This document shows positions 2,575 through 43,914 of a DNA stretch of 64,000 bases, one piece after another. The notes beneath the pieces are model-generated. The model saw only the letters and a list, made by a program, of their open reading frames with translations. It made no database searches and was not told where the DNA came from. The position numbers were made by a program, and so were the translations under genes. Each line of letters begins with the position of its first letter. Within the stretch, counting starts at the first letter, position 1. Origin of the DNA: Gnetum montanum (lineage: Eukaryota; Plantae; Gnetophyta). The stretch is from assembly GCA_015680685.1 (NCBI GenBank), contig MNCI01001543.1, positions 62,001 to 126,000 of the forward strand, in the 5' to 3' direction.

Positions 2575-2825
2575 CCCAGTTTAAGGTCTTGGTAGACCAT
2601 TAGATGTGCTGGTTTAAGGTCCCAGTAGACCATGATATGCTAGTTTAAGGTCCTAATAGACTGCTGTGCTAGTTTATCATCATAGCAGACAGTGGATGCA
2701 CTAGTTTAAGGTCGTAGAAGACCGTGCTATGGGTGCTAGTTTTATGTCATTTCCCTAGGACGTGTTATGCCAGTTTATAGTCATAGCGAACTATTTGTGC
2801 TAGTTTTACATCATAGTGGACATTC
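2575..2825 (-). repeat. Degenerate ~30-35 bp tandem array (minus core GACCTTAAACTAGC) after the integrase stop of B
   Basis: About 8 recurrences of GCTAGTTTA(A/T)(G/C)(G/A)TC on the plus strand. Confidence 0.8.
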
Positions 2826-6996: not shown

Positions 6997-7115
6997 ATGG
7001 TGCGCAAGCATGAGCGTAGGCATAGGGGACTTGATAAGATAGAAGATGTGAAGGAGACTCTGGGACACCTCTCCAAGACACATGTTGAGGTGCGGGAGGA
7101 GGCTCCGTTTGCACA
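6997..7115 (+). pseudogene. Antisense accessory gene of B, exon 1
   Basis: MVRKHERRHRGLDKIEDVKETLGHLSKTHVEVREEAPFA aligns with C exon 1 (HLVLAKVEEVKKTLRHAPQVSVSVWKSTPLI). Ends phase 2 at a decayed donor CA|ATAAGT. Confidence 0.65.
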
Positions 7116-7819: not shown

Positions 7820-9405
7820 TGAAACACCACTAATTTTAGCCTACCACTTTGAAACAACTCAAGCCCTTTCGAAGTTTTAGGAGGAAAAACTTGACCAAGA
7901 CATGGAACTCATGCTGTTAGGTTAGCTTGCCCTCAGTATGAGCAACTCCAACAGCTTTACGATCAAGACAAAAATTGTCCAAATTTGAGGATGTAAGCCA
8001 TCCTCAAGCACCACTAATGATTACTCCAAGCTTTAGCATTTAGGAATTCAAATTTGGAGACAAATTGTTCACATTCTCATGCTGATGTTGTCACTCATGC
8101 TGAGGTCATGTTGGCAGCATGAGTGCAGTGTGAGTAAATCTTAGAGCCCAAAACTGAGCGAAAATGATCTGATTTCCAAGGTGCAAGTCATCATCAGGGT
8201 TCATTATTGACATCTTCAGATTTTGGCCTCTGGAATTCCAAATTTCAGGTCCAAAAATTGCAAGATTTTGCAGCTCACGTTGTGGTCACGCTGCACTCAT
8301 GCTAGCAGCGTGAGTCCAGCATGAGCTACCCAAGAGTGGTGTAAAACAAGTCAAATCAAGCTCAATTTTTGACTTGCAAATCATTCTCAAGGTCAATCAT
8401 AGTTATGAAATCATTACACTTCAAGAATCAGGCTTGAAAAATCAAAATTTGGTGTGAAATATGTCATTTTGGCTCACTCACACTGAGGTCACATTGAGGT
8501 CATGCTGGCAGCGTGAGTGCAGCATGAGTGCAGTGTGAATACTGATCACGCTTAATGGAAAGCACGCCAAACTCACACTGAGGACATGCCAAGATAAGAT
8601 CAACTCACGCTGGAAGCCCTGGTGGACTAGAAATGCTTCAAACAGCCACAAAACCACTTAGATCAACATCTTGCAGCAGTCAATTCAAAGATCAAGAAGT
8701 TTCAAGCGAGCTGGAGTCAAAAACATAGCTTGCCTACACATGTCCAACTCACACACAGCTACCCATCGGACATGTGTCCCATGATCTATTTTCCTCTCAT
8801 CTCTTAGCCATTGATTCCATCTATGAATTTCACACCCAAGCCCACCCAAACCCTATAAATACCCTGTCAATTCACATAAACAAGATTGGCAATTTGAAAG
8901 ATTGATAGCTTAGGACGCACTAACTAGCGACTTTGGATAGTTAGACATACTTGACCCTTAGCATCCAAGCATTTCTAAGACACATCACATCACCCCAGGG
9001 CTTGGTGCTTGACCTGTCATCCACATGTGCAGCTAGGTTTTGACTGATGCACGTCTTTTTTGAGCAATACAATACAGTTCATTTTTCCAACCATTATTTT
9101 GTTTACTCTATTTTACATTCATTTTACATTTTGTTTGCAATACTATTCTGTATACATTTTGTTTGCATTTCTTACATTAATGTTTACATTTTGTAGATCA
9201 TTAGTTACAATAACCCCAGCGTAAGCCATAGTTTACGCTCGGGGAATTCCTTGGTTGATTTGTGTGTAGACCATCCAAGGCACTCCTCCTTTGTTTCCTT
9301 TTCTAGCTTGCCCTCAAGTAAAGGTAGGGCTAGCTATGTCTGCCTAATGATCTTTTAGTGTTTTTTTTCCCTTCTAGCCTTACATCGACAATTTAGGTTA
9401 GTACA
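7820..9405 (+). repeat. 5' LTR of A
   Basis: TGAAACACC...TTAGTACA, direct repeat of 25437-27165; TATAAATA at 8854-8861. Confidence 0.93.
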
Positions 9406-9411
9406 ATAAAT

Positions 9412-9428
9412 TGGCACTAGCAGGATGG
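9412..9428 (+). promoter_or_regulatory. Primer binding site of A (degenerate tRNA-Asn type)
   Basis: TGGCACTAGCAGGATGG, 6 nt after the LTR, versus TGGCGCTAGAAGGAGGG (complement of the plant tRNA-Asn 3' end). Confidence 0.7.
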
Positions 9429-9699
9429 CCACCTGCAAAAAACTTCTTATGTTAATTGAGACTGGAAACCTGCAAAATTCTTATGGAAAGCACTTTAAAC
9501 TCCACCATTAGATCCCAAAATAGCATACACATGCTAGTTAAACAAGCTATTTCATTGATAGTCTACCAAGTAATGTTCCACCACCACCGTTGACCATTCA
9601 CATTGAGCTTCTCTCACCACCTACCCAGCATGTCACGCTAGCTTACACAAGTTTGCCTTGACTTACTCACTCCATTGCCCAATACTTTGTGTTGTCAAC

Positions 9700-9905
9700 A
9701 TAACCTACTCATGCTAGCTCATGCTAACTATCACCTCACGCTGTCAGTCACCTCACACTATTTGTCAGATCACGCTGTCTATCACCTCACGCTGTCGGTC
9801 AACTCATGCTATCTGTCACCGCACGCTATCTATTAGCTCACACTAACTGTTAGCTCACGCTGCAGTTAACTCACATTGTTAGTTCATGCTGATAGTTTCT
9901 CATGC
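9700..9905 (+). repeat. ~17-18 bp tandem repeats (CACCTCACGCTGTC-like) in the 5' UTR of A
   Basis: About 10 CTCA(C/T)(G/A)CT recurrences at short regular spacing. Confidence 0.75.
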
Positions 9906-9939
9906 TCAACTCGTCTAGCCTAGTTTACTTACACTCACT

Positions 9940-12900
9940 ATGAAGTCCTCCCAAATTAACCCAGTGACACTACCGATCTATGACTTTGGGGTTGAAACCT
10001 TGAATCCTATGACTTCTATAGAATCCATAACTATTATTGAATAGATAATCCCCCAAGGCCCTATTCTCTAGTCACTCAGGCTACAGGGCAAAGACCCTAC
10101 TTATGCAACTCTTACACCCAAATAGTATAACTTCATCTATGTCAAGATCCAGGCCAACTTGCCTATCGATCATATAGAGAAGGAAGCGAAGCGAGAGTAT
10201 GAAGTTATTTACAAAGGAGGTCATGAGTTTATCCCCTCAGCATTTGATATAATTCCTCTTTCCAAACATCATCATAAACTCATATCCCAGCTTCTCATGG
10301 CAAGGAGTCAAGCCTTACAACCACCTCCAATAGAGCCTTAGAGTGGAGATGTGGAAGATGACTTCGTAGACCAATCTGAACATGGGGATTTGTACCATAC
10401 CATCAGTCCCCATGCTCATACAAACTCACTATTCCAAACCTTCCTAGAAGAGATCATACTTCTAGCTTTATCTGTGAATGCTTGACCACCAGCTTCTCTA
10501 CTGAAAATACCAACCTCCATTCCTATCTTCTCTAGGCTCAATACTCAATCTCATATGTCCACTTCCATCATACCTCCACAAATATAGTCCCAAAAACCTC
10601 CTCCCCAAACTAATGTAGGACTGACCTTTTGACCTCAAAGAATTGGGATGCCATTGGTTATACCAGCTTCCACGTCCACCCATTACATGCCTCAAGTGCA
10701 AATCCACGGAGCACCATTGATTACTTCAACCCAACACATTCAGGGAGTTACCTCACAACCTGTGGTTGGGCAATGGGTTCCACCACCACTTGTTTAGCAA
10801 AACCTGTCTACTCACTGTAGCATACCACACCCTGTGGTCTCAGCCCCGAATGTCATCCCACTGCAACAAACGATAGTCCAAAAATCTCTCTTTCCACAAA
10901 CGATGCAACAATCGAGTCATTATCAACCACCACCAACTCAGCCCACTGGTATGCCTACCACCCAAGAGTGGGCAAACATGAAAAAAATGATGCACTCATT
11001 AGCAAAAGAACTAAAGCACCTCAAAATTGTAAACACCGAGGAAGTCAAGGTACTGGACTTCTACCAAGATGATACAATTAACCCCTTAGTTCCCCCATTA
11101 ACCTTGCCAAAAGGAGTCTCATTACCCTAGCTAACCAAGTACAATGGAGAGGAAGATCCAAACGCTCACCTAGTAAAATTTTGAATAGAATGCCTATTGC
11201 TTCAGGCATGGCCTCATGTAATTCTGCATGTGTTTGCTATGTCTTTAATGGGAAAATCCTTAGACTAGTACCAAGCTTTGTCCCATAGCTCCATATCTTC
11301 TCTAGAGGACTTGTTACACCAGTTTGTCACCCATTTCAAATACAATCTAAAGCCTAAAGCCACGTTGGATAGCCTAATTCAGATTAAACAAGCATCATTA
11401 GAGCCAACACAAAAATTTATCCAAAGGTGGAATGTAGCCTTGAATGAACTTCACGAGCCCATCCCTGAAACATATCTGCTTACAATCCTTAAGGTAGCTG
11501 TGAATGACTTTATAAAATCAAAACTTTATTATTTGAAAGCTCATGCCTTGAGCCAAGCATTTGTGCAAATTAAGGACATAGAAGAGACAGCACAAACAAG
11601 CAATGGCCCAACTTACTTGACCTTTAGGAGCCAACATATGAGGAAAGATAAATCCAAAACAATGGTAGCAGTGGTAGCAGAGATAGCCTGACCTAACCAT
11701 CCAGGGAAAAAGGGAAAGCAACCTGCTATCCCAAACAGCTATGAAAGAAATACACTCATGCCTACACCCAAACCTTCATCAAATAGAAATACCAATATGG
11801 GTCACTCCCATACATTCTAAAGAAAATAACCCACTCAATACACATCCTTGCGTATGAAGCCTTCACAATTTCTTGATCAACTTCTAAAGGCTGAGTTAAT
11901 AAAACATAAGCAAATGTCTCCCGTGGCATATCAAAAACATGATCCATTTTTTGAGTTGGCCAAGAACCCAGCCTTAGCAAGAGCTAATGAACCCCCCATT
12001 CCAAGAGGCTTTAGGTTGGATAGGTTTTGTGAATATCACTAGTGGTGTGGTCATGGGAGTGATTACTGTTTCACCTTGAAACAGGATATACAATGCATGA
12101 TTGATAGGGGTGAAGTAATATTCAATGATGCAAACCCAGTAAGACCCCAAAACCAACCCATGGGGGTATACAAAGATCCTCTCAATACTAGTGATGCACC
12201 ATATGTGATTAATACTATCCATGTGGACAACAGACAAGATGTCCCATGAAAACATTTTGTGATTAGCAGGCCTTCAGAAAACACACCGACCCCAACATTT
12301 CCTCAAACCCATTTTATCACACACACCTCTCCCGCACCACAAAAACCATTCATCATCCATGCACCTCCTTTTGTTGCAAAAAAAACCACACCATTTGAAA
12401 ATCGACCCATTCCCTTTGTGATCTAGGTGCCAAAACATCCTGACACACAATCCACCTCTGTTCCACCATGACCTCTTTGAGAACGTCTTGCCAATAGGCT
12501 AACAAGAGAGCACCTGGAAAGAGAAAACCATGAGCACAAATTAGGACCACCAAATCCCACACCGCTAAACATTGTTCCCATGAGTCTGTCCACTAATGAG
12601 CTTGGTACGAGTCATCAAAATAAAGATAATGTCACGAATTGTGTCTCGAACCTAACATCCTTAGTTACCAATGCAAAAATTCATCCATGAGAAATACAAA
12701 TGCTGGGTCAAATGGACCAAGTCTCTGTTGATAAAAGTATTCCAAACGGTAAAGACCTAGTGAGCACGTTGACCCAGGTTACATAGGCCTTGAAACAAAA
12801 GAATACTTCTTTAAGTCTGTATGACCTAGTAATGACTTCACCAGTACATCGGGAGGCTCTCATGTGGATGCTAACTTCAATTCTTGTTAGTGAGGACCTC

Positions 12901-13705
12901 CCTGTGGATGAGCCATACATTTAAGCAGTATTGTCCCCACAACCTCAAGAATCAAAGACCACATCCCTAGAGTTTCGTGCTAATGACATTAAGCTAGAAG
13001 AGAAAATAGGAGAAGTCACCATAGCCCCTATGTTCATAATGATATAGGTTAATCATTTCAAGATACATAGAATGCATGTCGATGACGGTGCAACAACAAA
13101 CGTAATACTTTTTCCCATCATCGAAAAACTGGGACTTACTGAACAAATACAGCCCATGACAACTTCTTTCCTGAAATCCTTTAGTGGTTCCCGCGTTGTG
13201 GTGAAAGGCATGATTACCATAGATTTCATAGTAGGGGACCAATTCCCCACATTAGCTGAATTTGTAGTAGTTGATGAAATGCCAAGGTTTAATTTGATTT
13301 TAGGACGTCCTTGGCTAGCTCGATTGAGAGATGTATCTTCACCAATCCATCAAGAAATCCACCTACCTTATGAGGGTGATGAAATCATTATACATGGGGA
13401 TACGATAACATCACTTACTTCCTCACACTTAGGAACAGATCAAGGGTCAGAAATTGAATTTTCTGAGCCTAATCAAGGAACCACAAGCACACTTCAAGAC
13501 ATGAACCCAACACTAACTCAAAACCCTACTAAAATTGAAGAAGCACCAAACAACGCAAACATAGGAGCCATTCCCACCGATGTCTCTTGGTCGGAATTAC
13601 CTTTCGATATCTCCAGTGAGGGGGAAGGTGAGTATAAGATCATACCTGCATGCACCACGCCTCATGTCAAGCTATGAAAGGTTAAGAAGCAACTTAACAA
13701 CTAGA
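9940..13705 (+). pseudogene. gag: gag-protease of A
   Basis: KYNGEEDPNAHL and capsid helices (11278-11691), zinc knuckle FCEYHxxCGHxxxxC (about 12025-12070), protease HVDDGATTNVI...FNLILGRPWL (13072-13677). Confidence 0.9.
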
Positions 13706-13719
13706 GTGAATTACCAATT

Positions 13720-13970
13720 TTCTGGAATGACGTTAAACTACCAATCGTCTGGTACGACGTTAAACTACCAACGAATGTCTGCAATGAAATTAAACTAGCC
13801 ATGGTCAGAAATGTCTGGTTCATCTTGGAGTTTCCCAAAAATTGTTATCACCTTCAGCCCACTATGGCCTAAAACTAGTAATCCCTCATTCTCCTCTTTC
13901 AATATAGATGCGACAGTCCACCATGACTTTAAACTGAGGTGCATAGCCTGAAATGGCTTTAAACAAATAT
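13720..13970 (+). repeat. TAAACT-core repeats after the PR stop of A
   Basis: Three ~27-30 bp copies TCTGG..(T/C)GACGTTAAACTACCAA at 13720-13800, plus dispersed TGGCCTAAAACTAG and GACTTTAAACTG. Confidence 0.7.
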
Positions 13971-14369
13971 TCACAAACTGAGGTGTGATAGTTCACAAAT
14001 ATTCATTACATTATGTCGAATTTTTTTTAGATGTTACAAATTACAATTTCAATTCATGCATTTTCATTACTTTTATTTTTCAAATATTTGTTTTATGTTC
14101 TACTCTACATTTTAGAAACTCACTTTACATTCAGCTACATGCATATGGTTGTGATATACTTGAGAAAATTGGAAGAAAAATAATAGAAACATGGAAAAAG
14201 AAAAAAAATATTAAATGTAAAAGTGGCAATAGAATGCCACCATTTTATACTTCAATCAAATCCATGTCATTACATCAGTTTTCATACATTCCTATTAGGC
14301 ATTTGAAAATACAAAACATCTAATAGCTAAAGCCAAGCTAACAGTCAAACTCATGCATCAATACTAGGA

Positions 14370-17300
14370 AGGGGGCTGATCCTCAAGACCCTCTTCATCA
14401 TCTACTCTTGCTCTATTGGGGCCAGCTCCATCATTAACATGTTCCTATAACAAAGCAGAAAACAAAAAATAAATAGGTAAGAGTAGTAAAGCAAATCATA
14501 AATTTAAAAATAATAACACTAACAATGAAAACAACAAAACCATACAAAAATAAATGCCATAATAAAACACTCACAAGTGAGGAAGGCCTTGAGTTGACCT
14601 CCAAACACCATAGAATCTCCACCTCGAGCACATTTTCCCAAGCCTCATCCAAGCCAAGATCAATACCAGCCAAGGTTTTACCCTTGTCCAGGGAAGTCTA
14701 GGTAGGATGCTCAAGAGAGAACATGCCTATCAAACCTTCCCTGGAGGTAGTGGTAATGGCTCTCTCGGGAGATCCCTCCACCTCAGTGCACTTGACAAAC
14801 TTGTCATAAGTAGGCTGCAAGCCTAACCCATCTATGAACATCTCCATCTGGCGATGTTCAACTGATTCCTCCTTTAACCATTTCTTATATTGATGCTTGT
14901 GGTCCTTTTGGTCTTGGCCCCACTTCTGCACTTTTGCAGCAAAGGACTTCCAATCATGACATTTCCTGTTCAACAAATCCATCTCTACTATTTGTTCTGC
15001 CAAATCCCATGTCGCCTGTACTTTGCTATTCAAAACCATCCAGTAACATGCATAGGTGATTTCAGATGTACACCAAGTTCTATCACCAGACAGTCTAGCA
15101 GCAGCAAGATCATAACGAGACTGGATATCACTCTTCTCCTCTCTCTCCTTTACTAGTGCTTCCTTCAATGAGTGCACCTCATCCCATGGATACTCAACCA
15201 AATGCCTACAAGTCCAAAGAGACTTGGCATTCTGTATGATGCAACCGGTAACTGCATCATACACATTTCTAGGGACTTCCTCAATATTCCCTGGCAGTTG
15301 AGGGAGAGTATCAATGTGAGTAGCTTTAGAAGGATCCCACTGGAGCTTGGCACCTACAGGTGTAAGCACCACACACATGAATCACCTAAAATAAAAAATG
15401 AACACAAAGAAACACAAATAAAACCAAACACTTAGCATAATAGGCAATGTACACATACCTAGTTCTAGATGAGTTTCTTGTAGACGAGTGACCACATCAT
15501 TAATGATGCCCTTAACAAAGTCCATTTTGCTAGGCATCTCAAGCCATGGCCTTAGTTGGTCAGTTGATGTGGGACAAGCAGGGGAGGTCACCTCAATTGG
15601 AACCTATGATCCTGACACCTCTACCCAAGATGTATGTGCCTCAGAAATCTTCGCATCTACCTCTGATGCTAGAAATAATCAAGATAACCTGGAAAAACAC
15701 ATGAAAATTAAAGGATGCAAAACATGGATTAAGCTAAAAGGAACATACCAAAAAGCCCTCTCCTGTTTAGCTTGGGCAAATCACCAAGCTACAAAGATCC
15801 ATCAAAGAAATCATCGAAGACACCTCTTTCATCACTTGAATGCCTAAGTGCATCCAAAGCCTCCACAAGCTTCGTCCCCATGACGTTTGTCACATCTTCC
15901 TCTTGTGAGGTGGGAGGTTCTTCGATCATTTCTTCTCTTTCCTTCACCTCTTCCTCCAGCCTTGTGACAACCACCTCAGGATTAACCATTAGGGCCAAAG
16001 CCTCTCTCTCTCTCTCTCTCTCTCTTAGGATTTTCCTCTAATAATTCCAAAATCTTAGAGTTAGTATAACATAGTATATATAACATGTAGGCCAAAAACA
16101 ACAACAAAAATAATAAATATATAACAATAAAATAAACTACTTATCCTCCACTGGTAGTACAAATTGAATATTATTTGCCCTTGGTGGCATCAAATCTGGA
16201 GCAGGCTCTCTTGGGCATTCATTCCTCTTCACCTTCGTCTTGGACTTCCCAACAGTCTCACCAATCAAATGTTCAGCCCTTTTAACAGACATGAGCAGCC
16301 TAGGCAGTTCCAATCCCAAGCTATCATGGGAATGATGGGAACAGCTGGCCACACCTCAACTAGTAACTGATATTGATTCGTCAATGTCTTCTGGTGGGTC
16401 TTGGGATCTAGTGGTGCTAAAAAAATTATGAATCCAAGGGTGGGACAGTTGTGAACGGTCCCTCAAAATATAGCGATTATCATCATAAACTACTAGGAAC
16501 TCAGCAAACCTACGTAGGTACCCCGTGAAGAAAGAAAATGTGAAATGAGATTTAGCATGGATGTTTGAACATAACATGATGATCTCCCCATGAAAACTAG
16601 ATCCAAGAAACTATTCCCAGTTGTAGTACATTCCTATCTCCAAAATTGCACGAATGACATGTGCAGACTCAATTCCAAGGTTTCTTCCTTGGGAAAGAGA
16701 TTTGGGGAATGCCCGTGCCCGGAAGAGAGGATACAGGAAATTCATCGCCACTGATCAGGTATCATCTCGCATGGCAAAGCCCTTAGGACCCCGAGACATG
16801 CCTAACCACTCCTCCAGCTCTCTTATGACCTAACCCTCTTTAGCTTCTTTATCTATAGTCACCCTGGCATCATCCATGGGTACACCAAAAAGATCAGAAA
16901 GGAACTCAATGGTCAGGTGAAAACATACCTTGACTCCTCGAACCTGCATGGTGAAATGGAAAGCATCGTTACTAAAAGAATCAACAATGGTGATCATCTT
17001 AGTAGCCGGAATACTAGAAGTCAAAGCTGTGAACAAGTCCATCAGACCTACCTGGGTAAGGTGGCTGATGATCAAATTAGAAGCTCTCTTCTGCAACCAT
17101 TGTTGTGATTGCTCTACCTCCCCATATTTCATTAAAAGGGTGGCCTTAGTACACCCTGTTATAATAGTAACTTCTTCAGAGGTGATGGTTGTTGTAAAAA
17201 GCGAAATATAAAGTGAAGAGTTTAAAAGAAAACATAATACCCAAGGGTGCAACGAAAAAGAAAACAGAGTCTACAGTGTGGTCATTTACCATCAGTAAAT

Positions 17301-19428
17301 GGTGTAGGTGGGGTAGGTGCAGGATCAATTCTTTTAGGGAAAATTGGCCCCTTAGAAGACCAATCCTCATGTAACCTACCACGAGCCTAGCAGTGCTCAA
17401 ATACTCTTGAAACCTACCTATGGTAGTCAACAAGGGCCACCTTTGTCTGGTCCAACACCGCGGCATGAAAAATGGGGCCCACCATGAATATTTGTAACAC
17501 TGTGCACACTAAGGTAAGCCCACCATCATCATCATGCATCCCATGTTCATCAAAACAGGGCCTGCATGGGAAAACAACATTTACATTTAGATGATGACAT
17601 AAAATTTAAAAAGGAATCAAGAAGTAAAGTAAGGCACAAAGGAGCATACTTGTCCACTCTATATACTGTCCCAGGTGGAATCTGGAATACAGTGTGCACA
17701 TGGAGGGCTAGGAAAAGTGTGTTTCTGTTATTGTAATGAATACAAGTAGGTAGCTCCCACACACAAGTCAAGGGACATTTAGATCTAGGACCCTCAGCAA
17801 GGCCTCCCTCAACCCTAAAAAGTCCCTCATCAATATTAGTAATAAAGCCAAGCATGCCTTGTGTATACCCGGGCAACATTGTCTCGATGATATCACGAGC
17901 CAATTGTTTGCTCAGGTGAGACCATAGGACCACACTAAAATTTTGTAGGATGAATGAAAAAAAAACTAACATCGGGGTGAAACCATATCACATGGGGCCC
18001 AATGCGCATGTCATAGGGAGGCGTTTCTGGTCCAAAGAGGCCAAACCAAGCAAGTACACCAACAAGCTCAACTATGAGAAGAGAAGGTTTAGGTCCCCTG
18101 CACACAGCCAAAATATTAGGTAAGTAAAATTCTAAGTGCTAATGATTTAAATGCTTTAAATGCATAGCTTCACCCCATGAGTCAAGGACACCAATATCTA
18201 TTTAGTGTATCTGACGCTCACCGAGGTACATTGAAATCCATTTCACAATAAATCCACATAAAAGTACAGAACATAAGCACTCATTGAAGCAAGGTTTAAA
18301 TCATCCATCGTAGGAAACTAGCAAGTAATGGGCATCCAAGCAAACAACGCACGACTTCATATTTTAGCTCAAGCTGGGGCCTTTCCTAACAAACCCACAC
18401 TAGGTTCCCACATTTTAACTCACACTGGAACCTGGAAGCAAACTCACACTGGGTTCCCACATTCCAGCTCATGCCAGAACCTACAAGAAAACTCACACTG
18501 GTTTCCCACATTCCAGCTCATGCTGGGAACTTGAAACTTGCCTGGAACCCTTGCCCTGTGCACACGCTACCCAAGACCTTATGGTCATGTTGAAAACTCC
18601 CCTTCCCCCTATAATGCCACTCATGTTGATGTTTAGCTGCTCACATTGGGCCTATTTCCATAACTCACGCTACAGTTACCAAGTGACTCACGCTAGGACT
18701 ATCCCAGCAAAACCACGCCATCTCTCCCCAACACTCACACTGGTTTCCTACATCCCAACTCACGCTGAGAATTGGTAGCTCATGCTGCCCAGAGAAATTT
18801 GTGTTCAAATTTCCTAGGGCACAAGAAGAGAAAAAAAGCTTAATGTTGCCCAAGAACCTGGCAATCACGCTACCAACAGAAAAATAGTAGGCCTTCTTGG
18901 CCCACACTCATGTTGGCCCTTTCATTTCCCATACTCATGCTAGCCATTTCCTAGCCTGATGCCCAAGAAAGCTAAAAAAACCCCTACGGACCATGAAGCC
19001 CCAAAAACTTGAAAACCCAACCCACGCTGCCAGGAAGCCCTAAAAGCTCATGTTATCCAGGATATTTTTGGCACTCATGATACTCTTGCCTCAAAAAGAT
19101 GTAAAATGAAACAAAATATAACTTGCATTCATGCCCTGCACACATGCCCTGAGCACTCATGCTCATGTTGACACCACAAAAATCCAAAACAGCAAGCCAA
19201 AACAACCCAAAATTCCAGCAATAGAAATTCTACCCTATGTAACACTATCCACAAAATGGCAAAGAAAAGAAAAAGAAAAAAAATCTACCTGTGTAGGGCC
19301 CCATCCCACGTGGGAATCTTGGCTTGGGGGAGCAGTTGGAGAAGCTCTTCACTCTCCTCCACAAACACTAGATCTGCCAACCTCTTCCCTTTGTCTTGGC
19401 TTGCCTTTCCTTTGCCCTTGTCCTTCAT
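14370..19428 (-). pseudogene. Antisense ~8-exon accessory gene of A (NIF/FCP1-like HAD domain, transposon-associated domain, acidic tract, coiled coil)
   Basis: E1 19428-19289 (MKDKGKGK..., AG|GT phase 2) joins E2 18097-17650 in frame (GPKPSLLIVELVGVL...FILQNFSVVLWSH...YNNRNTLFL). E3 17561-17290, E4 about 17190-16141, E5 about 16030-15749, E6 about 15686-15458, E7 about 15353-14577, E8 about 14444-14370. Homologous to B, C and D. Confidence 0.8.
18390..18545. repeat. ~49 bp tandem repeat (x3) in intron 1 of the antisense gene of A
   Basis: ACTCACACTGG(G/T)TTCCCACATTCCAGCTCATGC-like units at about 18393, 18442 and 18491; a further copy near 18732. Confidence 0.75.
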
Positions 19429-20019
19429 GGTTGCCTTTCCTCACACTGACATTTATGCTATAGCTCACACTATACTCCTAGCTCACGCTACAATCTAAGA
19501 ACTCACACTAGCAAGAATGATGCTTCCTTACTTCAAAACCCCCTTTTAAACCCAAAACATTTTATTTTCTCTTATTTTATTTTATTCTATTTATTTAAAT
19601 TTACCATGTCTAATTTTTTTTTCATTTATGTCATCTTTATTTCATGTTAGCTTAGTATTTCTCCCTATTCTAGCCTCTGGAGATGAGGCCTAAAAAAAAT
19701 CATTATTATGCAAAGGAAGGGATGAAAAGTAAAATCAACAAAAAAATATATACATATATAAACATTTCAAAAATTCATAAAACTTTAAAGTCTCATAAAT
19801 TTATCATTCGTGCAAAATTTAAAAATAAAAAATGCTCTATGCGCTTAGCCCAAATGACAAGTCAACATGAATACTATCGGCCTGGTATGGCCTAAAATTG
19901 CCATCTGGCCTGGTACAGCCTAAAAATGCCATGACTACCACTGTGTATCCCGATTTTTTTAGTACATAGTTGAAATACCCTGTGTTTGTTTACATTTAGT
20001 AACTCTTTCGTCAAGGGGA

Positions 20020-20053
20020 TGTCTCTTACTTCGCTCTTGGTTTAAATTGGCAG
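20020..20053 (+). promoter_or_regulatory. Candidate 3' splice acceptor upstream of the pol ATG of A
   Basis: TCTCTTACTTCGCTCTTGGTTTAAATTGGCAG|GAGCAAGCACATGG; the ATG at 20064 is in frame with the ORF at 20217. Confidence 0.55.
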
Positions 20054-20063
20054 GAGCAAGCAC

Positions 20064-23000
20064 ATGGCCACCAAGAATATCCTTTCAACACTATCTCTCA
20101 GTGGACCATATAGGGAGGTAAAAAGGGCAATCAATCTAGAATCCTTGGGTCTAGACCCATCCATCTATACTAATTTAATAGCCTCCACTCAAGAAACGTT
20201 AGACTAGCCTAAAAATGTGACTAAGAGTTTGGATCTAGAAGCCAATAATATCACTCAAGATCCTCTGGTTGAAGTCCCCATTACTTCATTCAATGGTGAA
20301 GCTAGAACATTGAAATTAAGTGTCCTAATAGACTCACAACTTGTCAGTGACATCACTCAAATACTAAAAGATAACATAAAAACATTTTCTTGGTCATATA
20401 CCGACATGCCAGGATTAGACCCCCGAATCATCCAACATAACATCATTCTTGATGAAAAAATTAAATAGGTGAAGCAATAGGCATGAAAGGTTAGACCTAA
20501 GGTGGCTTTGGCAGTCCATGCTAAAATCACAAAGCTCTACCAGGTAGGTTTCATCCAGGCCATTGACTATTTCCATTGGGTATCAAATATTGTAGTAGTC
20601 CCTAAGAAAAATGGTAGTATATGCATATGCATTAACTTTTGTGATCTTAACACAGCCACTATAAAAGATGACTTCTTGCTACCTAGCATCAATCAACTTA
20701 TTGACATGACTGCTAGGCATGAACTATTATCCTTTATGGATGGATTTTCAGGATACAATCAAATAAAAATCAACCTGGAACATCAACTTTGAACAACTTT
20801 TATGATTCCTTGGGGCATATTCTGCTATACGATGATGCCATTTGGCCTCAAAAATGTAGGAGCTACATATCAATGAGGAATGACATATATATTTTTTGAT
20901 TACATGATCAATTTTCTCAATGATTATATTGACAATATCGTGGTTAAATCTAAAACAACTGAACAACATGCGAAAGATCTAGACCTAGTGCTTAAACGTT
21001 GTCTCAAATATGACCTTAGACTAAATCCAAAGAAGTGTGTCTTTGGTGTCAAAATGAGCAAGATGTTTGGTTTCATAGTCTCTGAAATAGGAATACAGGT
21101 AGACCCTAATAAGGTTAAGGCAATAACTAATATGCAATCACCAAAGAACCTTACCGAACTATGTGGTCTCCAAGATAGACTGTAGTTCATAAGGCACTTT
21201 ATCGAGAGGCTAACAAATACGTTGAGACCTATGTAGCACCTACTACAAAAGAATGTGCTTTTCCAATGGACTCAACAATGCCAAGAAGTGTTTGAGAACA
21301 TAAAGTAAGAACTAGCTCAACTACCAAAATTTTATCCTCCTCAAGGTGATAAACCCTTCTACATCTACCTTGCAACTTTCGATTCTTCCATCACATCCAT
21401 GCTTTGTCAAAAACATCAAGACGGAGTTGAAATCCCAATATATTACCTAAGCCATGCCTTGATTGACTATGAACAACGATACAATGAAGTAGAGAAATCA
21501 TGCCTCGCCCTCATCTTCACCTTGAAGAAATGACAGCATTATCTCTTTCGCAATCAAGTTTACATAATTTGCAAGAATAATGTACTACGTGCTATCACCG
21601 ACAACATCTACAAGTCGAGTAGGATAGCTAGGTGGAAAGCAATGATAGCAGAGTTTCACCTACACTATGTTGCTCAATCTTCTATAAAAGGTCAAGCAAT
21701 AGTCACATAGTTAACCATCTCGCCAACGCATGATCAAGCAACGATAAACCCTGAATTCCTTGACAAGAATGTTAATAGTATAGACATCATACCCGACAAC
21801 TACAAGGAAATCCTCTATTTCGATGGAGCTTCAACCTCCTGAGGAGGAAGTGCTATGACCATTTTAACATACCCCTCTGGAGAAATCCAACCCTTCACCT
21901 ACTGATTAACCTTTCCTTGTACTAATAACATGGTGGAATACAAAGGTCTTCTTAGAGGTCTTCAAGTAGCATTGACTTCAGGAATCTCACATTATGTAGT
22001 TTGAAGTGATTCACAACTAGTCATTAATCAAGTCACTGAGGTTTACACATGTAAGGCTCTCCATTTTCAACCATATTGTGATTTGACCAAACATCTTCTA
22101 AGGAAACTAGTAGAAACATATATACAACATGTCCCTAGGAGCAAAAACACCATCACTGATGCACTCGCTACATTAGCCTTAAACATGACACCTGAAATGT
22201 TCCATGTGTTGCCTAGCTCTATAACAAGTTGCGTTGAACATATAATTAACACTCTTGATGAAATACCTATAGCATATGTTAGCACAACACATGTAATAGA
22301 ATGGTACAATGAGATAAAAGAGTACCTTCTACAAGGTGAACCTTTGCAACATTTGACAAATGCTCAAAAAGACGCAGTAGGAAAATGCTCTCAGTAATAT
22401 GCATTAATAGGAGACACCTTGTGTTGAAAATACTACAAAGGAATTCTTTTGATGTGCATTAGTAGCATCGATGGTCAAAAAATTGTAGAACAAGTCCATG
22501 AAGGACTTTGTGGAGGGCACATTGCACCCAAAGTAATGACGACAAAGATTAGGCACTTAGGCTACTACTGGCCACACATGGAGTACGATTGCATCTCCAA
22601 GGTTAGAACATGTGACATTTGCCAAAGGCATGGTAACCTAATACACATGCCACCTAACGAATTTCACATAACACAAATCACATGACCATTCCAAAAATGG
22701 GGATTAGACTTAATTAGACCGATAACGCCATCATCCTCTGTGGGACATAGCTTTATTATCACTGCAACTGAATACTTCAAAAAATGGGCAGAAACTATTC
22801 CCCTTAGGAAGATCACTTCAAAACATATTTCCACTTTCATAATAGAAAATATCATGACCTGTTTTGGTATTTTGATGACCATCATTACTGAAAGTAGGCC
22901 ATAATTCAGTAGTGCAAATACTAAAAGCTTCTATGAAAGCCTAGGTATTAAACATGCATTTTCATCACCTTCCTACCCACAGAGTAATGGTCAAGAAGAG

Positions 23001-23539
23001 GCTATAAACAAAACTGTGATCATGGTGCTCAAAAAATTCTGAATCAGATCAAGAAATGATGGCATGAACAATTAGTTTACGCATTGTGGGCATACAAAAT
23101 GACACATCAAACATCTATAGGTAAAACTCCATATAGTCTTGTATATGGATCTGAAGTTGTTTTACCTTTAGAATTATAGGTTCCCTCGTTGCGGATAGCT
23201 CTCTTGGGCATCCTCAATGAAAATCAAAACAATGAGCTACACATTACTGACCTCAACTCAGTGGAGGAAGAACGTGTTTGAACACTTGATCAGATTGATT
23301 GGTACCAGAAACAACAGTGGCAATGACACAAACGTGACATGCATAAACGCTCGATTAAAGAAGGATACTTAGTCCTTAAGGCCTCCCGTGAACATCCAGA
23401 CAAATTCTCAAACAACTAGGAACGGCCTTATTTAGTCACCAAGGCATACAATAATGGAGCATTCAAACTTGCTGACATGAATGGAAATGAGTTTGCTAAT
23501 CCCATGAATCACTTGTACCTGAAACGGTACTATGTCTAA
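20064..23539 (+). pseudogene. pol: pol (RT-RH-aRH-INT) of A
   Basis: FSWSYTDMPGLD, WVSNIVVVPKKNG, SFMDGFSGYNQI, YIDNIVVKS, LNPKKCVFG; aRH YFDGAS..TNNMVEY; INT VHEGLCGGH..GYYWP..CDICQ. Confidence 0.93.
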
Positions 23540-23550
23540 TGAACATGAGG

Positions 23551-24230
23551 CACAGAAAAGTCCTGGAATTATGACTTAAAACTGATACCATAGAACAGTC
23601 CTGGCATTATGACTTAAAACTGATACCACAGAACAATCCTAGCATTATGACTTAAAACTGATACCATAGAATGGTCCTAGAATTATGACTTAAAATTGAT
23701 ACCACAGAATAGTCCTAGCATTATGACTTAAAAATGATACCATAAAAAAATCTTGGTATTATGAATTAAAATTGATACCACAAAACACTCCTAGCATTAT
23801 GACTTAAGACTGATACCATACAACAGTCCTAGCATTATGACATAAAATTGATACCACAAAACAGTCCTAGCATTACGACTTAAAACTAATACCACAGATC
23901 ACTCCTGGCATTACAACTTAAAACTAATACCACAGAACAGTCCTAGGGCTATGACTTCAAACTAGCACCATAGAGTGTCCTAGAGTCATGACATTAAACC
24001 AACATCATAGAGCTCTATCTAGTATGACACTAAAATGTCATATTTTTCTGCCATGACATAAAACTAGCACCCAGAGTCCACTAAGACTATAAACTTTTTT
24101 GCCTCTTTATAGTCTAGTACGACTATAAACTAGCAGTGCACTATCCACTACGATGCTAAACTGGCATCGTCCAAAGTGTTATGACATGAAACTAATCCAC
24201 AATAGTCCACTAAGACTATAAAGTGGCTAC
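23551..24230 (+). repeat. 38-bp tandem array (CAGAACAGTCCTGGCATTATGACTTAAAACTGATACCA), about 11-12 copies, then a degenerate tail
   Basis: TCCTGG at 23561 and 23599 gives period 38; regular to about 24000, then shorter GAC..TAAACT units. Confidence 0.92.
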
Positions 24231-25420
24231 ATCATCGATGGCCCAGCAATATTTGAAAATACATGTTGCTGTAATTGGTTGTACTTGTTCCACAAAGAAC
24301 CTTCTGCATAATTTGTCTCATAGATCTTATTGAGGCTGATGTTTTTTATGATGCTATTTTCTTTTAAATTGCACATGGTGTCTCCATATCCTTGTTTGCT
24401 TTCAGGTTTGAAGTGCTTAGCTAACCAAATCATTTGTGGTTTCCCTATCTCCTTGGAGTTGTGTTTGTAGGATGACATGCCTGACGCATTAGTGCATGGA
24501 TGCATTTCATTATCACAACAAGGTATCACATTCTTCCTAAGGCCTGCAACTGGGTTAATCAATCCGTTCATAAGTACATTCCCAGCTCCTAATGCATTCC
24601 CCATTTTCCATCATGTTCCCTTTATCCTATTCAATTACACTCCTAGATACTCCTCCCAAAACCCTTGATACATTGTTGCACACTGTAACTCTCCAAGAAG
24701 TTGCAATGCAAAACACAGTACACGCTACATGATACAAACATAAGCACATGAGCACGAGCATAGCACTAAAAGCAAGCTCATTCAAAAAGACCCAAAGTAA
24801 AATAAAAGAAAAAGAAAAAGTAAAACAAAAGAAAAAGAAAAAAAACAAACAATAAAGAAAAGTAAAAAGAAGAAAAAAAAGGTTAAAGAGAAAAAATGCA
24901 CAGAAAAGGTCTTGATGACCCCATGGACATCTCGGATCAAAGACCATTGGCTCTTCTCATACAAGCCCCAGGTGAGAAGGCAATTGTCTTGGAAAAAATA
25001 GTTAAACTCATGTCTCAAACGATCATGTTGCACATCATTGCGTGGCTTTGGTTGTTTACAATGGGCTCCCATAAACACTCTATGAAAGTCCTGTTTCTCC
25101 AAAGAATGCACCTCCTATGTCTGGGCCCCGAGTCTGCTGAACACTGGCTATTGACAATGACCAAAGATATAGCTCATTCACGTGAGATCATTCCTCTCCT
25201 ACAATTTCGATAGCAATTATAACCCTTGATCAACTCTTGGCTTCCCCTAGTTACAACCAATCTCCTCACATCTTGAACTACATCCCCTCAATCCCATGTA
25301 CTTTTGAAAATGGTGCGATGACATCCAGCCAAGGGTTGACAGATAATGCTTGGTACTTGGTTGTTCATGGGGTTTTTCACTTCTTTGTTGATGCCTCTTG
25401 GGTGGATTCCTACAGATGTC

Positions 25421-25436
25421 AACAAAGAGGGACCAA
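25421..25436 (+). promoter_or_regulatory. Polypurine tract of A
   Basis: AACAAAGAGGGACCAA abutting the 3' LTR. Confidence 0.82.
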
Positions 25437-27165
25437 TGAAACACCACTAATTTTGACCTAACACTTTGAAACAACTCAAGCCCTTTCAAAGTTTCAGGAG
25501 GCAAAAGTTGACAAAGACATGGAACTCATGCTATCAGGTTAGCTTGCCCTTAGTATGAGCAACTCCAACAGCTTTAGGATCAAGAGAAAAATGGTCCAAA
25601 TCTAAGGATGTAAGCCATCCTCAAGGGTCACTAATGACCACTCCAATATTTAGCATTTGGGAATTCAAATTTGGAGACAAATTGTTCACATTTTCACGCT
25701 CACGCTATCACTCACGCTGAGGTCAAGCTGGCAGCATGAACGCAGCGTGAGTAACTTTTAGAGCCCAAAACTGAGTTAAAATGATGTGATTTTCAAGGTG
25801 CAATTCATCCTCATGGTTCATTGTTAATAACTTCATATTTCAACTTCCAGAATTCCAGATTTCATGTCCAAAAATTGCAAGATTTTGCAGCTCACACTAT
25901 GGTCACGTTGCACTCACGTTGGCAGCATGAGTCTAGCGTGAGCTACCTAAGAGTGGTGTAAAACAAGTTACATCAAGCTTAATTTTTGACTTTCAGATCA
26001 TTCTCAAGGTCAATCACAGTTAGGTAATCATTACACTTCAACAATCAAGCTTCAAAAATCAAAATTTGGTGTGAAATATGTCATTTTTGGCTCACTCACA
26101 CTGAGGTCACGCTGGCAGCATGAGTGTAGCATGAGTGCAACGTGAATACTGATCACGCTCAATGGAAAGCACACCAAAATCTATCTAAGTACATGCCAAT
26201 ACAAGATCAACTCATGCTGGAAGCCTTGGTGAAATAGAAATGCCTCAGACAGTCACAAAACCACTCAGATCAACATCCTGCAGTAGTTAATTCAAAGATC
26301 AAGAAGTTTCAAGTGAGCCGGAGTCAATTTCTCTTGTTGTACATTATGATTTTTCATTGTAAATGTTCATCATTTGTGGCCGTACAAAGCTCTTACACTC
26401 CAAATTGTATCTACTTCCACAAGCATAAGCTAGCTTGGGCAAGCCAACACATGTTGTAAGATACAATGCACCTGGTCAAAAATGTAGCTTTCCTACACAT
26501 GTCCAACTCACACACAGTTGTCCATCAGACACATGTCCCATGATCTGTTTTCCTCTCATCTCTCAATCATTGATTGCATCTATGAATTCTACACCCAAGC
26601 CTGGCCAAACCCTATAAATAACCTGTTAATTCACATAAACAAGGTTGGAAATTTGGGAGATTAACGGCTTAGGAAGAACTAACCAGCAACATTGGACACT
26701 CAGACATAGTTGACTCTTAGCATCCAAGCATTTCTAAAACACATCACATTACCCCGATGCTTGGTGCTTGAACTACCATCCACACGTGTAGCTACTCTTT
26801 GATAGGTGCACATCTTTTCTAATAAATACAATACAATTCATTCTGCCAGCCATTAGTTTGTTTACTCTATTTTACATTCAGCTTACAGTTTGTTTGCAAT
26901 ACTATTCTGTATATGTTCTTTTTACATTTCATACATTACTGTTTACATTTTATAGATCACTAGTTATGATAGCCCCAGCACAAGCCATAGTTTACGCTAG
27001 GGGAAGTCCTTGGTTGATTTGCGTGCAAACCATCCAAGGAACTCTACCTTCGTTTCCTTTTCCAGATTACCCTTAAGCAAAGGCAAGGTCAGCTGTGTCT
27101 ACTTGATTATCTTTTCATGTTTTGTTTTCTCTTCCATCCTTACACCGATGATTTAGGTTAGTACA
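25437..27165 (+). repeat. 3' LTR of A
   Basis: TGAAACACC...TTAGTACA, matches 7820-9405. Confidence 0.93.
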
Positions 27166-27535
27166 ATGTCCATCGTACTTGTTCCACTGCTACATTGCAT
27201 GAGGAGTAGTTGTCTAGCTACACTGTGCATAACGCAGCTACCACCCTTATGTGAAGTGTAAATGTTATGCTACATCCTACGATGCATGTCCTCTATGTTG
27301 TGCTATGTAGTGCATAACTATTACTATGTGGGGTGCATCCACTATGTTACACTATGTGGGACTTAATTGCTACACTACGCTACATATGACATTTTGCTAG
27401 GCCATGTTTAACTTTGTTTCATTACGGACACATTGTTTCATGTCAAAAGAAAATCTATAAATGGAGGATCATGATATGAAACATTAGTAATCATTACTTC
27501 AACACAGTGATAATGTTTGGTGCTTTGTTATGCAG

Positions 27536-30093: not shown

Positions 30094-30099
30094 GTTTTC

Positions 30100-30116
30100 T
30101 AGTGCTAGAAGGAGGG
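30100..30116 (+). promoter_or_regulatory. PBS of C (tRNA-Asn type)
   Basis: TAGTGCTAGAAGGAGGG, 6 nt after the LTR, 15/17 to TGGCGCTAGAAGGAGGG. Confidence 0.85.
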
Positions 30117-30149
30117 CCTTTTGGTGTATTTTTCACGTGTCATGGTAGT

Positions 30150-30850: not shown

Positions 30851-30936
30851 TTTACTGCTTTTTCTAACTTTCTTTTTTGATCGCACTCTTTGTCATAGCT
30901 TTTTCACTTTTCTATTGCATAACTACCTACTTAACA

Positions 30937-40411: not shown

Positions 40412-40423
40412 GTCGAGCAAAAC

Positions 40424-43400
40424 ATGGGAATCCATCATGACCTTTCCATGCCTTTAACGTTAGCAGGGCCACAGGGCAAGCTCGCTAGACAATTGAACCC
40501 TGGCATGATCCACTGGGGGTTGACTACGACTAGCACTATAGCAACCTTAGAAGCATCCCATGATTGGCCTAGGCACCTAGTCCAAGCTCTAGACTTAGAG
40601 GCTAGGGAGGTACCCGAGGACCCTCTTATCGAGACACCTGTGACCATGTCAAAGGGGGAAGTGAAGACTTTAAGAATCAGCTCCCTCCTAGACACACAAA
40701 CATATAAAAGCGTAGCTAAAATTCTGCAAGATAACATCGATGTATTTGCATGGTCATATAGTGACATGCTGGGTCTAGATCCGCTGCTAATTTAGCACAA
40801 CATCATCCTAGACCCACACATGAAGGAAGTCAAGAAAAAAGCTCGCAAGGCTAAACTGGAAATCGCGCTGGTTATGAGGGATGAAATCATTAAGCTATAC
40901 CAAGTAGGTTTCATCCACGCAGTTGACTATTCAGAATGGGTGTCCAACGTCGTTGTAGTTTCAAAGAAAACAGGAGGGATACAGATCTGTATAGACTTCC
41001 AAGATTTGAACAAGGCAATGATCAAAGAGAACTTTCCACTCTCGAGCATTGATCAGCTCATCGATACCATGGCTGGCCATGCTCTGCTATCCTTCATGGA
41101 TGGTTTCTCTGGATACAACCAAATATTGCATTAACCTAGAGCACCAGCTGTCAACAACCTTCATGACCCCATGGGGGACATTTTGCTATACCATGATTCC
41201 ATTTGGTCTCAAGAATGCTGGATCAACCTACAAGAGAGCCATGACTTACATTTTTTCAGTGACTACATCCTAGAAACATTAAACGATTATCTGGACGATA
41301 TAGCGATCAAGTCCAAAGAGGTGGCTAATCATCCACATGATCTAGGGGTAGTCCTCAAATGCTACCAAAGGCATGATCTATGCCTCAATCCTAAGAAATG
41401 TGTCTTTAGGGTGAATACCAGACGTGTGTTAGGGTTTGTATTATCGAAGGTCAGAATACGGGTGGACCTCGACAAAGTCAAGGCCATCGTCAACCTAGCG
41501 CCTCCCACAAACCTTAAAGAATTACGTGGCTTACAAGGTAGGGTGTAATTCATTCGAAGGTTTATAGCAAGGTTGACCGACAAGTTACACCCCATGCAAC
41601 ATCTTCTAAAGAAGGGGGTTGACTTCGAGTGGACAACCCAGTGTCAACAAGCCTTCAATGACCTGAAGAAGGAGCTCTCGCACCTCCCAACGGTGCACCC
41701 GCCACAAAGGGACAAGCCTTTCTTTATATATCTTGCCACCTCCAACACATCCATAGTGGCATTGCTATGTCAGAAGTGGGATGACGGTTCTGAGATACCA
41801 GTGTACTACCTGAGCCATGCACTAATAGATATGAGACGAAATACAATGAAGTGGAGAGGAACTGGCTAGCCCTAGTGTTCGCACAAAAGAAGTGGCGGCA
41901 TTACCTATTTTACAGCATAACCAACATCATTTGCAAGAGGAATATACTCCTAGCTATCACCAGCAACCTGTACGAAAGTAGCAGGATAGCCTGATGGAAA
42001 GCAATAACCGTAGAATTTGATCTATGTTATGTAAGTCAATCGTTGGAAAAGAGTCAATCCATAGCGACCCAACTCATGGCCTCGCCTGTCGACAACCAGG
42101 AAACCATAGACCTCGAGTTCCCAGACGAATATGATAGCAATGTCAACATCGTCCCGTCACATTTCGAAGCCACTTTACACTTCGACGGTGCCTCAACCGT
42201 GTGAGGAAGTAGCACCGCCTCCACAATCACGTTCCCCTCTGGGGAAATGCATCCATCAGCTTATCGATTTATGTTCCCTTGCACCAACAACATGGTAGAA
42301 TACGAGGGGCTACTTAGAGGCCTCTTAACTACCCGAGCACTACGCATAGAACACCTGGCAATCCGAGGAGATTCACAGCTAGTCGTAAATCAAATCACCG
42401 AAGTCTACACCTGCAAGGCTACACACCTGCAACCCTACTGCGACCTAGCAAAAATCCTACTTAAGCAATTCACAACCGTTGATGTGCAACACGTGCCATG
42501 CAATGAGAACACTATAGCAAACACCTTAGCTACCTTCGCGTTAAACATCCCATCACACTCCTTGGTAAACCTGCCAACTGCAATCATAGAATGCATAGAG
42601 CCTATAACTCAGGCAGAACATGTGGCCTCTATCAGCATTGCGGATGCCCCGAAGTGGTATGCCAACATTAAAGCTTATCTACAGCACGTAGAACCCTTAG
42701 GTGGATTGACATCTAATCAAAGAGATGCAATCCGTAAGCGTGCTTGACAATACGTGCTCATGGGAAATAACGCCTTGTGCTAACGATCCTACGACGAGAT
42801 ATTGCTAGCATGTGTGGGTGGAAAGAAAGCGCAAAAGGTAGTTCATGAAGTTCATGAGGGGCTATAAGGTGGACATATAGCACCTAGGGCTATGGTTGTG
42901 AAAATCAGATTCCTAGGGTACTATTGGCCCTACATGGAGCACGACTGTTTGTCAAAAGTTAAGATATGTGACATGTGCCAAAGATACACAAAGCTCATAC
43001 ACATAGCACCTACAGACCTGCATCCAATGCAAATCACATGGCCCTTCCAATGATGGGGACTAGACCTCATAAGGCCTATCATGCCTAAGTCCTCCGTAGG
43101 GCATAGTTTCATTATCACTACCACAGAGTATTTTACCAAGTGGGTGGAAGCTATTCCCTTGAGGAAAATGACATCTCAGCAAATCTACCATTTCATCCTT
43201 GATAACATCGTAACTAGGTTTGAGCTTCTAATGACTATTGTGACCGACAATGGGCCACAGTTCAGTAGTACAGAAACCTAAACCTTCTGTAGCAATCTAG
43301 GTATTAAACAATAATTTTCTTTCCCTTATTACCCATAGGTGAATTGGCAAGTGGAGGCTACAAATAAGTCCATCATCAACTTTCTAAAGTAGATGCTTAA

Positions 43401-43896
43401 CAACAGCAAGAGGCGGTGGCATGAGAAAATCCTCTACATCCTCTGGGCTTACCGAATGATGTGCCAAACTGCAACAAGTAAAACCCATTATAGTCTTGTT
43501 TATGGATCTAAAGCTGTATTGCCTCTTGAGTTGTAGGTACCCTCACTCCAGATGATCCTATCTGACATCGTGAGAAAAGCCTAAAACAATGAGTCATGAA
43601 CCATCAACCTCAACTCAGTGGAGGAGGAATACATGTAGACTCTGAGATGCATCGAGCACTATCAGAAAAAATAGTAGTAGAAACACCGTGCAGACCTGCA
43701 CCGACAACTAGTGTAGAAGGAATACCTCATCCTCAAGGTCATTCGTGAGCACGTAAGCAAATTCTCAGCCAACTGGAAATGCCCTTACGTGGTCACTAAA
43801 GCCTTTCGAAATGGAGCCTTCAAGCTAGCAGACATGGATGGCAATGAGTTCACCAACCTGGTGAATCACTCGTACCTCAAGCCGTACTACATCTAA
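40424..43896 (+). pseudogene. pol: pol (RT-RH-aRH-INT) of C
   Basis: FAWSYSDMLGLD, SFMDGFSGYNQI, YLDDIAIKS, LHFDGAS..CTNNMVEYEGLL..IRGDSQLVVNQ, TEYFTKWVEAIP..IVTDNGPQF. Confidence 0.94.
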
Positions 43897-43914
43897 AGCA
43901 CAATGGCAACGACA

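Follow-up and report, generated by a model that had tools for sequence, protein, structure and literature searches.

The window analysed here, a stretch of 64 kb from contig MNCI01001543.1 of Gnetum montanum, contains four Ty3/gypsy long terminal repeat (LTR) retrotransposons, called A, B, C and D, and all the copies described below come from this single window. With a probability of roughly 0.8, these elements belong to a lineage of the Tat type which carries, in a gap of about 6 kb between protease (PR) and reverse transcriptase (RT), a selected and spliced gene of eight exons on the opposite strand. The gap, measured from a candidate donor beside the PR stop to an acceptor before RT, is 6373 nt in A, 5664 nt in C and 6215 nt in B after removal of A and C, which are inserted in B, so the size of about 5.5-6.5 kb given in an initial annotation of this DNA was right. 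The same annotation had placed in the gap an opposite-strand gene of about eight exons, the first five of which were seen in D. Comparison of the copies likewise predicts eight exons and seven introns in A, B and C, and D retains exons 1-5, with exon 5 truncated by the LTR of B at 56696.

Predicted exons, introns and splice signals

The gap regions of the copies show no similarity in a standard DNA search; the antisense stop-to-stop pieces of A match B, C and D in the same order with 30-45% protein identity. The coding part of exon 1 is 140, 119, 110 and 128 nt long in A, B, C and D, respectively, ends in phase 2 in all four and joins exon 2 in frame, and exon 2 is 448, 450, 450 and 440 nt long, exactly as the initial annotation had it. 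Upstream of the gene, a TATA-like box about 150 nt before the ATG of exon 1 is common to B and C, with weaker ones in A and D, and position -3 of the antisense ATG is a purine throughout. The exons and the other features are listed in Table 1.

The predicted introns have the ends GT and AG, at homologous places and in homologous phases, in almost every case. GT donors are found at introns 1-7 of A without exception, at introns 1-5 and 7 of C and at introns 2, 4, 5, 6 and 7 of B. Intron 1 is in phase 2 in A-D, introns 4 and 5 are in phase 1 in B and C, intron 6 is in phase 1 in A and B, and intron 7 is in phase 0 in A, B and C. Exon 2 has the acceptor TGCAG, with G as the next base, in A-D, and its donors are GTATGC, GTATGT, GTGAGT or GTAAAG. 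Furthermore, exons 2, 4 and 7 align between copies with z values of 11 to 158 against shuffled sequences, whereas introns 1, 2 and 4 give no alignment (z below 1.5 by the same measure). The exon lengths are held (450/450/448 and 1050/1032/1049 nt), and the guanine + cytosine (GC) fraction is 0.44-0.50 in exons and 0.20-0.37 in introns. The acidic exon 5 is the sole exon without alignment between copies. That LTR bodies and introns do not align, as had been judged by eye, thus holds for introns 1, 2 and 4 and also for the LTRs, which align within their own element only, apart from one short stretch between B and C.

It is conceivable that the gap is coding but unspliced, that is, that it contains several small antisense open reading frames (ORFs), or one long ORF broken by decay, and that the supposed introns are decayed coding sequences or spacers. 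Several apparent exon limits in A are indeed single in-frame stops inside the long exon 4 and not introns. However, the seven intervals vary in length from copy to copy, show no alignment, are AT-rich and interrupted by stops in every frame, and their GT starts and AG ends fall at homologous points in matching phases; in addition, changes of frame are resolved by splicing alone, for example, where the phase-2 exon 1 joins exon 2 in all four copies. An unspliced gap is therefore very improbable.

Coding strand, selection and descent

The strand was tested on DNA alignments made with small words and without choosing a frame. Positions 17146-16374 of A and 47032-47798 of B align over 773 nt with 6 gaps, and the mismatches are 45, 30 and 61% at antisense codon positions 1, 2 and 3, respectively (chi-square p = 1e-11); B and C show a like codon-position pattern over 1082 nt (p = 2e-9). 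Because position 1 of the sense frame is position 3 of the antisense frame, sense coding would need the greatest variation at codon position 1, and the antisense frame was therefore the selected one. An extra protein encoded by the sense strand of the gap, the antisense frames being mirror images, might be supposed from the sense ORFs of 134-201 codons in the gap of C and from sense-frame pieces of C that match B at 34-36% identity, but the antisense identities are higher (42-48%), and the most variable base, the splice signals and the Pfam NIF match described below are all on the antisense side, so that sense coding is hardly credible, the least probable of the explanations considered.

By its codon pattern, the predicted antisense gene was under purifying selection while the lineages diverged. 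The initial annotation had attributed the exon structure to selection and not to recent copying, and this view is upheld by the codon pattern, by intron positions, phases and GT..AG ends kept although the lineages are saturated at synonymous sites, and by the conservation of exons but not of introns.

The identities of gag-PR, pol and the antisense gene are 50, 57 and 38% for A-B, 50, 58 and 38% for A-C, and 57, 64 and 48% for B-C. The three regions rank the pairs alike, so the antisense gene descended with the element and evolved faster than gag and pol. Judged from this ranking, it is a vertically inherited cargo of the element and not the result of repeated insertion. An independent mobile element or host gene inserted in each element, or elements inserted repeatedly around a host gene family, would account for a 21-nt direct repeat that flanks the gap of A (13854-13874 and 19877-19897) and for the similar motif arrays at both gap ends. 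These flanking repeats, however, are no scars of an insertion, since they belong to a motif array which is present after integrase too; four elements with their own LTR pairs agree in the position, orientation and exon order of the segment, and its divergence tracks gag and pol. Moreover, target site duplications or terminal inverted repeats belonging to the segment, which the initial annotation had named as signs of independent insertions, were looked for, and no inverted repeats or duplications bracketing the antisense segment were found. Independent insertion is accordingly highly improbable.

Decay and other contrary observations

Several observations weigh against a selected and spliced antisense gene. 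All four copies are broken by stops, frameshifts or insertions, including a frameshift in exon 2 of A, and all of them are long-dead pseudogenes. Donor 1 of B is AT, and acceptor 2 and donor 3 of B and acceptor 3 of A are unrecognisable, although such exceptions fit decay. Exon 6 of C is largely missing, beside an N at 36364. An in-frame stop stands just before the exon 5 donor in A (15790), B (48360) and C (36470), and it could be an alternative end of the protein and not decay. The ratio pN/pS (proportions of nonsynonymous and synonymous differences) of protein-guided codon pairs is 0.41-0.57 with a saturated pS of about 0.73, but it is lowered by bias, the pairs having been taken from protein-selected segments, and the frame-blind test is cleaner. 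As for the encoded protein, the NIF call is weak: the Pfam profile NIF (PF03031) matches C 38579-38887 with E = 1e-4 and 22.4 bits, so that the curated cut-off of 21.8 is passed in C only and by less than 1 bit. Finally, no relatives of the central and C-terminal parts were found among 1.84 billion representative proteins or in a word-indexed library.

Such decay could also be that of a passenger, i.e., an intron-bearing host gene captured once in antisense, carried passively and decaying neutrally, and the pseudogene state of all four copies, the evolution of the gene at a faster rate than gag and pol, and an exon 5 without any conservation are in its favour. Nevertheless, codon pattern, equal exon lengths and GT..AG ends have all been kept, although none of the three would survive neutral carriage to saturated synonymous divergence, and the introns, which are truly unconstrained, no longer align. 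A neutral passenger is for these reasons improbable.

The stop near the end of exon 5 is four codons before the donor in both B and C, and exon 5 is symmetrical, with phase 1 on both sides. Two readings are possible: a cassette exon, from which a short and a long protein would result, or Gln codons that were turned into stops by C-to-T changes in parallel. A donor overlapping the stop codon was considered for this conserved stop and rejected because the phases do not fit.

B and C have TAG stops at identical codons in exon 4 (47505 and 37430) and in the last codon of exon 7 (49573 and 35494), which fits deamination of methylated CAG. These shared stops were considered as the mark of a dead common ancestor, and this was rejected: other copies have there Gln or Arg codons one C-to-T change from a stop, so parallel deamination is enough, and B and C share about as many stops as hot spots would lead one to expect. 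As to exon 6 of C, the N at 36364 is a single one, placed where most of the exon and intron 6 are missing, and it is possibly an assembly gap instead of a true deletion.

The predicted protein

The protein predicted from the exons has about 1000 residues and consists of a short N-terminal peptide, a NIF/FCP1-like domain of the haloacid dehalogenase (HAD) type, a large central domain, an acidic stretch and a charged C-terminal region. Exon 2 of C covers positions 2-89 of the 160 positions of the PF03031 profile, and the exon 2 pieces of A, B and D gave no Pfam hit. The exon 2 piece of A had an Atlas feature score of 0.93, with NIF as 30 of the 30 nearest clusters, and in all four copies the hydrophobic strand that precedes the active site can be recognised, as can the core that follows. 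The fold of exon 2 thus probably belongs to the NIF/FCP1 family. HAD phosphatases need both aspartates of the catalytic motif DxDx(T/V). The corresponding site is DIGGV in C, ELVGV in A, ELLGV in B and ELDDI in D, that is, only D retains the second aspartate, and only C the first, which is Glu in the other three. Since the motif is degenerate in all four copies, the predicted protein is likelier to be a pseudo-phosphatase than an enzyme.

Outside this domain, about 850 residues are without detectable relatives, among them the central 350, the acidic stretch and the C-terminal 280. A sequence search of PDB with three exon pieces gave no match, and the word-indexed library gave nothing for the NIF piece of A or for a seven-row alignment of the central domain. 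An AlphaFold model of the central domain from this shallow alignment has a predicted local distance difference test (pLDDT) value of 41 and is unusable. The sole match of a 226-residue C-terminal piece among the 1.84 billion representative proteins was rejected as a tandem-repeat artefact, and DUF7709, a weak hit in A which was not repeated in B, was dropped. The central-domain pieces of A-D had no Pfam hit, at E values up to 10, to the plant mobile domain (PF10536) or transposase-28 (PF04195); a short motif around the G-V-P-x-D-G stretch may resemble them, though Pfam supports neither.

The elements and their clade

Self-comparison of the window gave three LTR pairs, those of A, B and C, and gag-PR and the RT-RNase H (RH)-integrase (INT) region were located in every element by protein-level mapping. 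Element C has a clean target duplication of 5 bp. The PR-RT gap of B houses both A and C, and that of D houses B. More precisely, A (7820-27167) is in intron 1 of B, C (28386-46918) is in intron 3 of B, and B (3-56695) is in exon 5 of D, so that each of the three nested insertions is within the antisense gene body of its host, a region of about 28% of an element (chance about 0.02). This hints that the antisense gene region is a preferred insertion target.

In the pol of C, the Pfam domains are in the order RVT_1, RT_RNaseH_2 (E = 7e-16), RVT_3 (E = 9e-17), which is an extra RNase H, Integrase_H2C2 and rve, so the extra RNase H is between RH and INT. An archaeal-type RNase H beyond that of gypsy marks the Tat clade, and its position between RH and INT marks the Ogre subclade (PMC6317226), and C pol has both. 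Ogre and Retand, which are within the Tat clade, have the extra RNase H at this place (PMC6317226). The elements are therefore supported as Ty3/gypsy of the Tat type by the extra RNase H and the domain order; the Tat lineage named in the initial annotation stands on these two characters. The extra-RNase-H piece found no proteins in the word-indexed library.

Long-period tandem repeats are present at 62036-62573 (181 nt) and 62701-63667 (about 380 nt), where the pol of D would be expected; this region of D (62036-63667) has no match to the pol pieces of A or C. A 49-nt tandem repeat occurs within the antisense intron 1 of A (18391-18523 and 18730-18780). An Rfam scan of the window gave nothing.

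Table 1. Positions of the elements, the predicted antisense exons and associated features in the window
Feature	Position	Strand	Remarks
Element A	LTRs 7820-9407 / 25437-27167	+	LTR identity about 85%
Element C	LTRs 28386-30093 / 45207-46918	+	LTR identity 85%
Element B	LTRs 3-1151 / 55540-56695	-	LTR identity 82%
Element D	right of 56696	+	fourth element
A gag-PR ORF end	13072..13677	+	present stop TGA 13675-13677; candidate sense donor after base 13680
A exon 8	14364..14444	-	stop TAG 14366-14364
A exon 7	14575..15353	-	C-terminal conserved block, charged helical stretch; in-frame TAG 14700-14698
A exon 6	15459..15668	-	
A exon 5	15749..16037	-	acidic, poorly conserved
A exon 4	16141..17190	-	large central domain, about 1.05 kb; four in-frame stops; 5' end approximate because the acceptor AG is not identifiable in A
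A exon 3	17418..17561	-	
A exon 2	17650..18097	-	448 nt, one frameshift; NIF/FCP1-like HAD domain
A exon 1, coding part	19289..19428	-	140 nt; ATG at 19428, purine at -3
A spacer, antisense ATG to RT start	19429..20053	.	would hold the antisense promoter; TATA-like box about 170 nt upstream of ATG
A RT ORF restart	20054..20468	+	candidate sense acceptor CAG before 20054; conserved ATG 20064
B exon 1	6997..7115	+	119 nt; donor AT, not GT
B exon 2	27536-27985	+	450 nt; followed by intron 2
B exon 3	about 28071-28180	+	decayed splice sites
B exons 4-8	46984-48033, 48160-48375, 48534-48671, 48756-49575, 49663-49725	+	
C exons 1-5	39499-39390, 38864-38415, 38332-38223, 37954-36923, 36786-36457	-	
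C exons 6-8	6 from 36385, 7 about 36318-35492, 8 from 35396 downward	-	exon 6 mostly missing
C pol	40412..43893	+	after candidate sense acceptor; ATG 40424
D exons 1, 2, 4, 5	60617-60490, 58948-58509, about 57990-56950, 56899 to cut at 56696	-	
Sense donor/acceptor pairs	A 13680/20054, C 34747/40412, B 50423/6326		candidate sites
Tandem arrays	A 13712-13771, 19879-19932, 23551-23963; C 34835-34979; B 50047-50182, 2578-2723		

Candidate splicing of the sense transcript

The tail of the gag-PR frame on the sense strand is conserved, and a candidate donor GT is found 4-7 codons before the PR stop (AAG|GTTAAG in A, TGG|GTTAGG in B and CGG|GTCAAG in C). The present PR stop of A, TGA, is CGA at the homologous codon of B. 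RT resumes at a conserved ATG, which a candidate CAG acceptor precedes by 10-15 nt. The two sites are in frame with each other in B and C, but in A they are out by one base; the donor is weak, with a pyrimidine at +3, and the in-frame match is possible by chance (about 1 in 9). There is thus about an even chance that the whole gap is a sense intron of Ogre type, about 6 kb long, whose partial removal would fuse PR to RT. Alternatively, the conserved RT ATG may start a separate pol message.

The gap ends are also occupied by tandem arrays with a core like ATGRCNTWAAACT and units of 27-38 nt (77 nt in C). In each element such arrays are placed directly after the PR stop, directly before the RT start and after integrase, and the first two sites bracket the antisense gene. 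In A, the array just behind the PR stop (13712-13771) has a TTAAAC core, and the one before the RT start (19879-19932) is related to it.

A possible mode of action and its significance

The features above can be combined into a tentative proposal, to which somewhat less than even odds are given: an active lineage would keep a full promoter-bearing gene of host style, with seven introns, backwards in a 6-kb intron of Ogre type that belongs to its own polyprotein message, and the NIF-like pseudo-phosphatase made from it would dock a phosphorylated target in favour of the element. In the favoured reading stated at the outset, the gap holds a complete opposite-strand gene, consisting of an upstream region with a TATA-like box, an ATG in good context, eight exons, seven GT..AG introns and a stop. 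This gene would be transcribed from its own promoter, solely from integrated DNA. In the sense genomic RNA, its introns would be reverse-complemented, would not be seen by the spliceosome and hence would survive reverse transcription; such shielding by the antisense orientation, proposed in the initial annotation, fits the data. The gap itself would act as a very long sense intron of Ogre type, and its partial removal would join PR to RT. The protein would be an accessory factor of the element, and the best guess is that it binds, without dephosphorylating it, a phospho-protein, for example a silencing factor or the tail of RNA polymerase II. If the tentative proposal is true, a single stretch of DNA serves the sense RNA as an intron and the antisense RNA as a split gene.

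Introns are normally lost through reverse transcription, and retroelements are therefore expected to carry intron-less cargo only. A gene with seven introns carried through many rounds of retrotransposition under selection would mean that antisense placement permits a split gene as cargo. In addition, a phosphatase-like fold would join the short list of domains in accessory genes of plant retrotransposons. If young copies are expressed, the roles of an antisense accessory protein and a polyprotein dosage set by splicing would become testable. In genome annotation, genes of this kind will be either taken for NIF-family genes of the host or masked altogether.

Comparison with known systems

Among the full-text literature searched, in which most subscription journals were outside the scope, neither an intron-containing antisense gene between PR and RT nor a NIF domain in an LTR retrotransposon was found. 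Antisense ORFs have been described only between pol and the 3' LTR, and the PR-RT intron of Ogre is short and non-coding (PMC7264820, PMC11963269, PMC4408406, PMC6317226). The placement between PR and RT and the multi-intron structure are thus new relative to the accessible transposon literature.

Ogre elements, like the present ones, have gag-PR in one ORF apart from the ORF of RT, RH, additional RNase H (aRH) and INT (PMC6317226, PMC4408406). The separating region of Ogre is an intron removed from part of the transcripts, and the counterpart here would be the candidate GT/CAG pair, in frame in B and C. The Ogre spacer, however, averages 274 bp and is non-coding (PMC6317226), whereas that of the Gnetum elements is 5.7-6.4 kb and contains a whole antisense gene; the Ogre design would thus be extended from a spacer of a few hundred non-coding bases between gag-PR and RT to a gene-bearing one of 6 kb. 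Ogre also has an extra ORF upstream of gag with a plant mobile domain and a coiled coil (PMC4408406), but here no conserved coding pieces of at least 40 residues were found between the 5' LTR and the first gag similarity (0.7-1.0 kb). Ogre and Retand have been placed in flowering plants (PMC6317226, PMC4408406).

The antisense ORFs of Retand, Grande and RIRE2 resemble the gene described here in being lineage-wide accessory genes on the opposite strand with their own promoter, no clear function and often a coiled-coil-like part (PMC7264820, PMC11963269). They are, however, located between pol and the 3' LTR and are single ORFs, mostly with transposase-28 or plant mobile domains (PMC7264820, PMC11963269, PMC4408406), whereas the present gene is between PR and RT and has seven introns and a NIF-like domain. 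The cellular HAD phosphatases of the NIF/FCP1/SCP type (PF03031) resemble exon 2, but here the motif is degenerate and the domain is fused to the approximately 850 residues without relatives.

HBZ of human T-lymphotropic virus type 1 (HTLV-1) is likewise antisense, transcribed from integrated DNA and spliceable; its start is in the 3' LTR, its product is a bZIP protein, and it has a single intron. The gene of the Gnetum elements, with seven introns, is in contrast an internal one and shows no sequence relationship to HBZ. HBZ and other retroviral antisense genes are mentioned in PMC7264820 and PMC11963269. Lastly, orchid Ty3/gypsy elements acquired an N6-methyladenosine (m6A) demethylase domain (PMC9289625), and there too a rare domain of host type became fixed in a gypsy lineage. 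The addition there is described as an acquired protein domain, whereas that in the elements described here is a separate antisense gene with introns.

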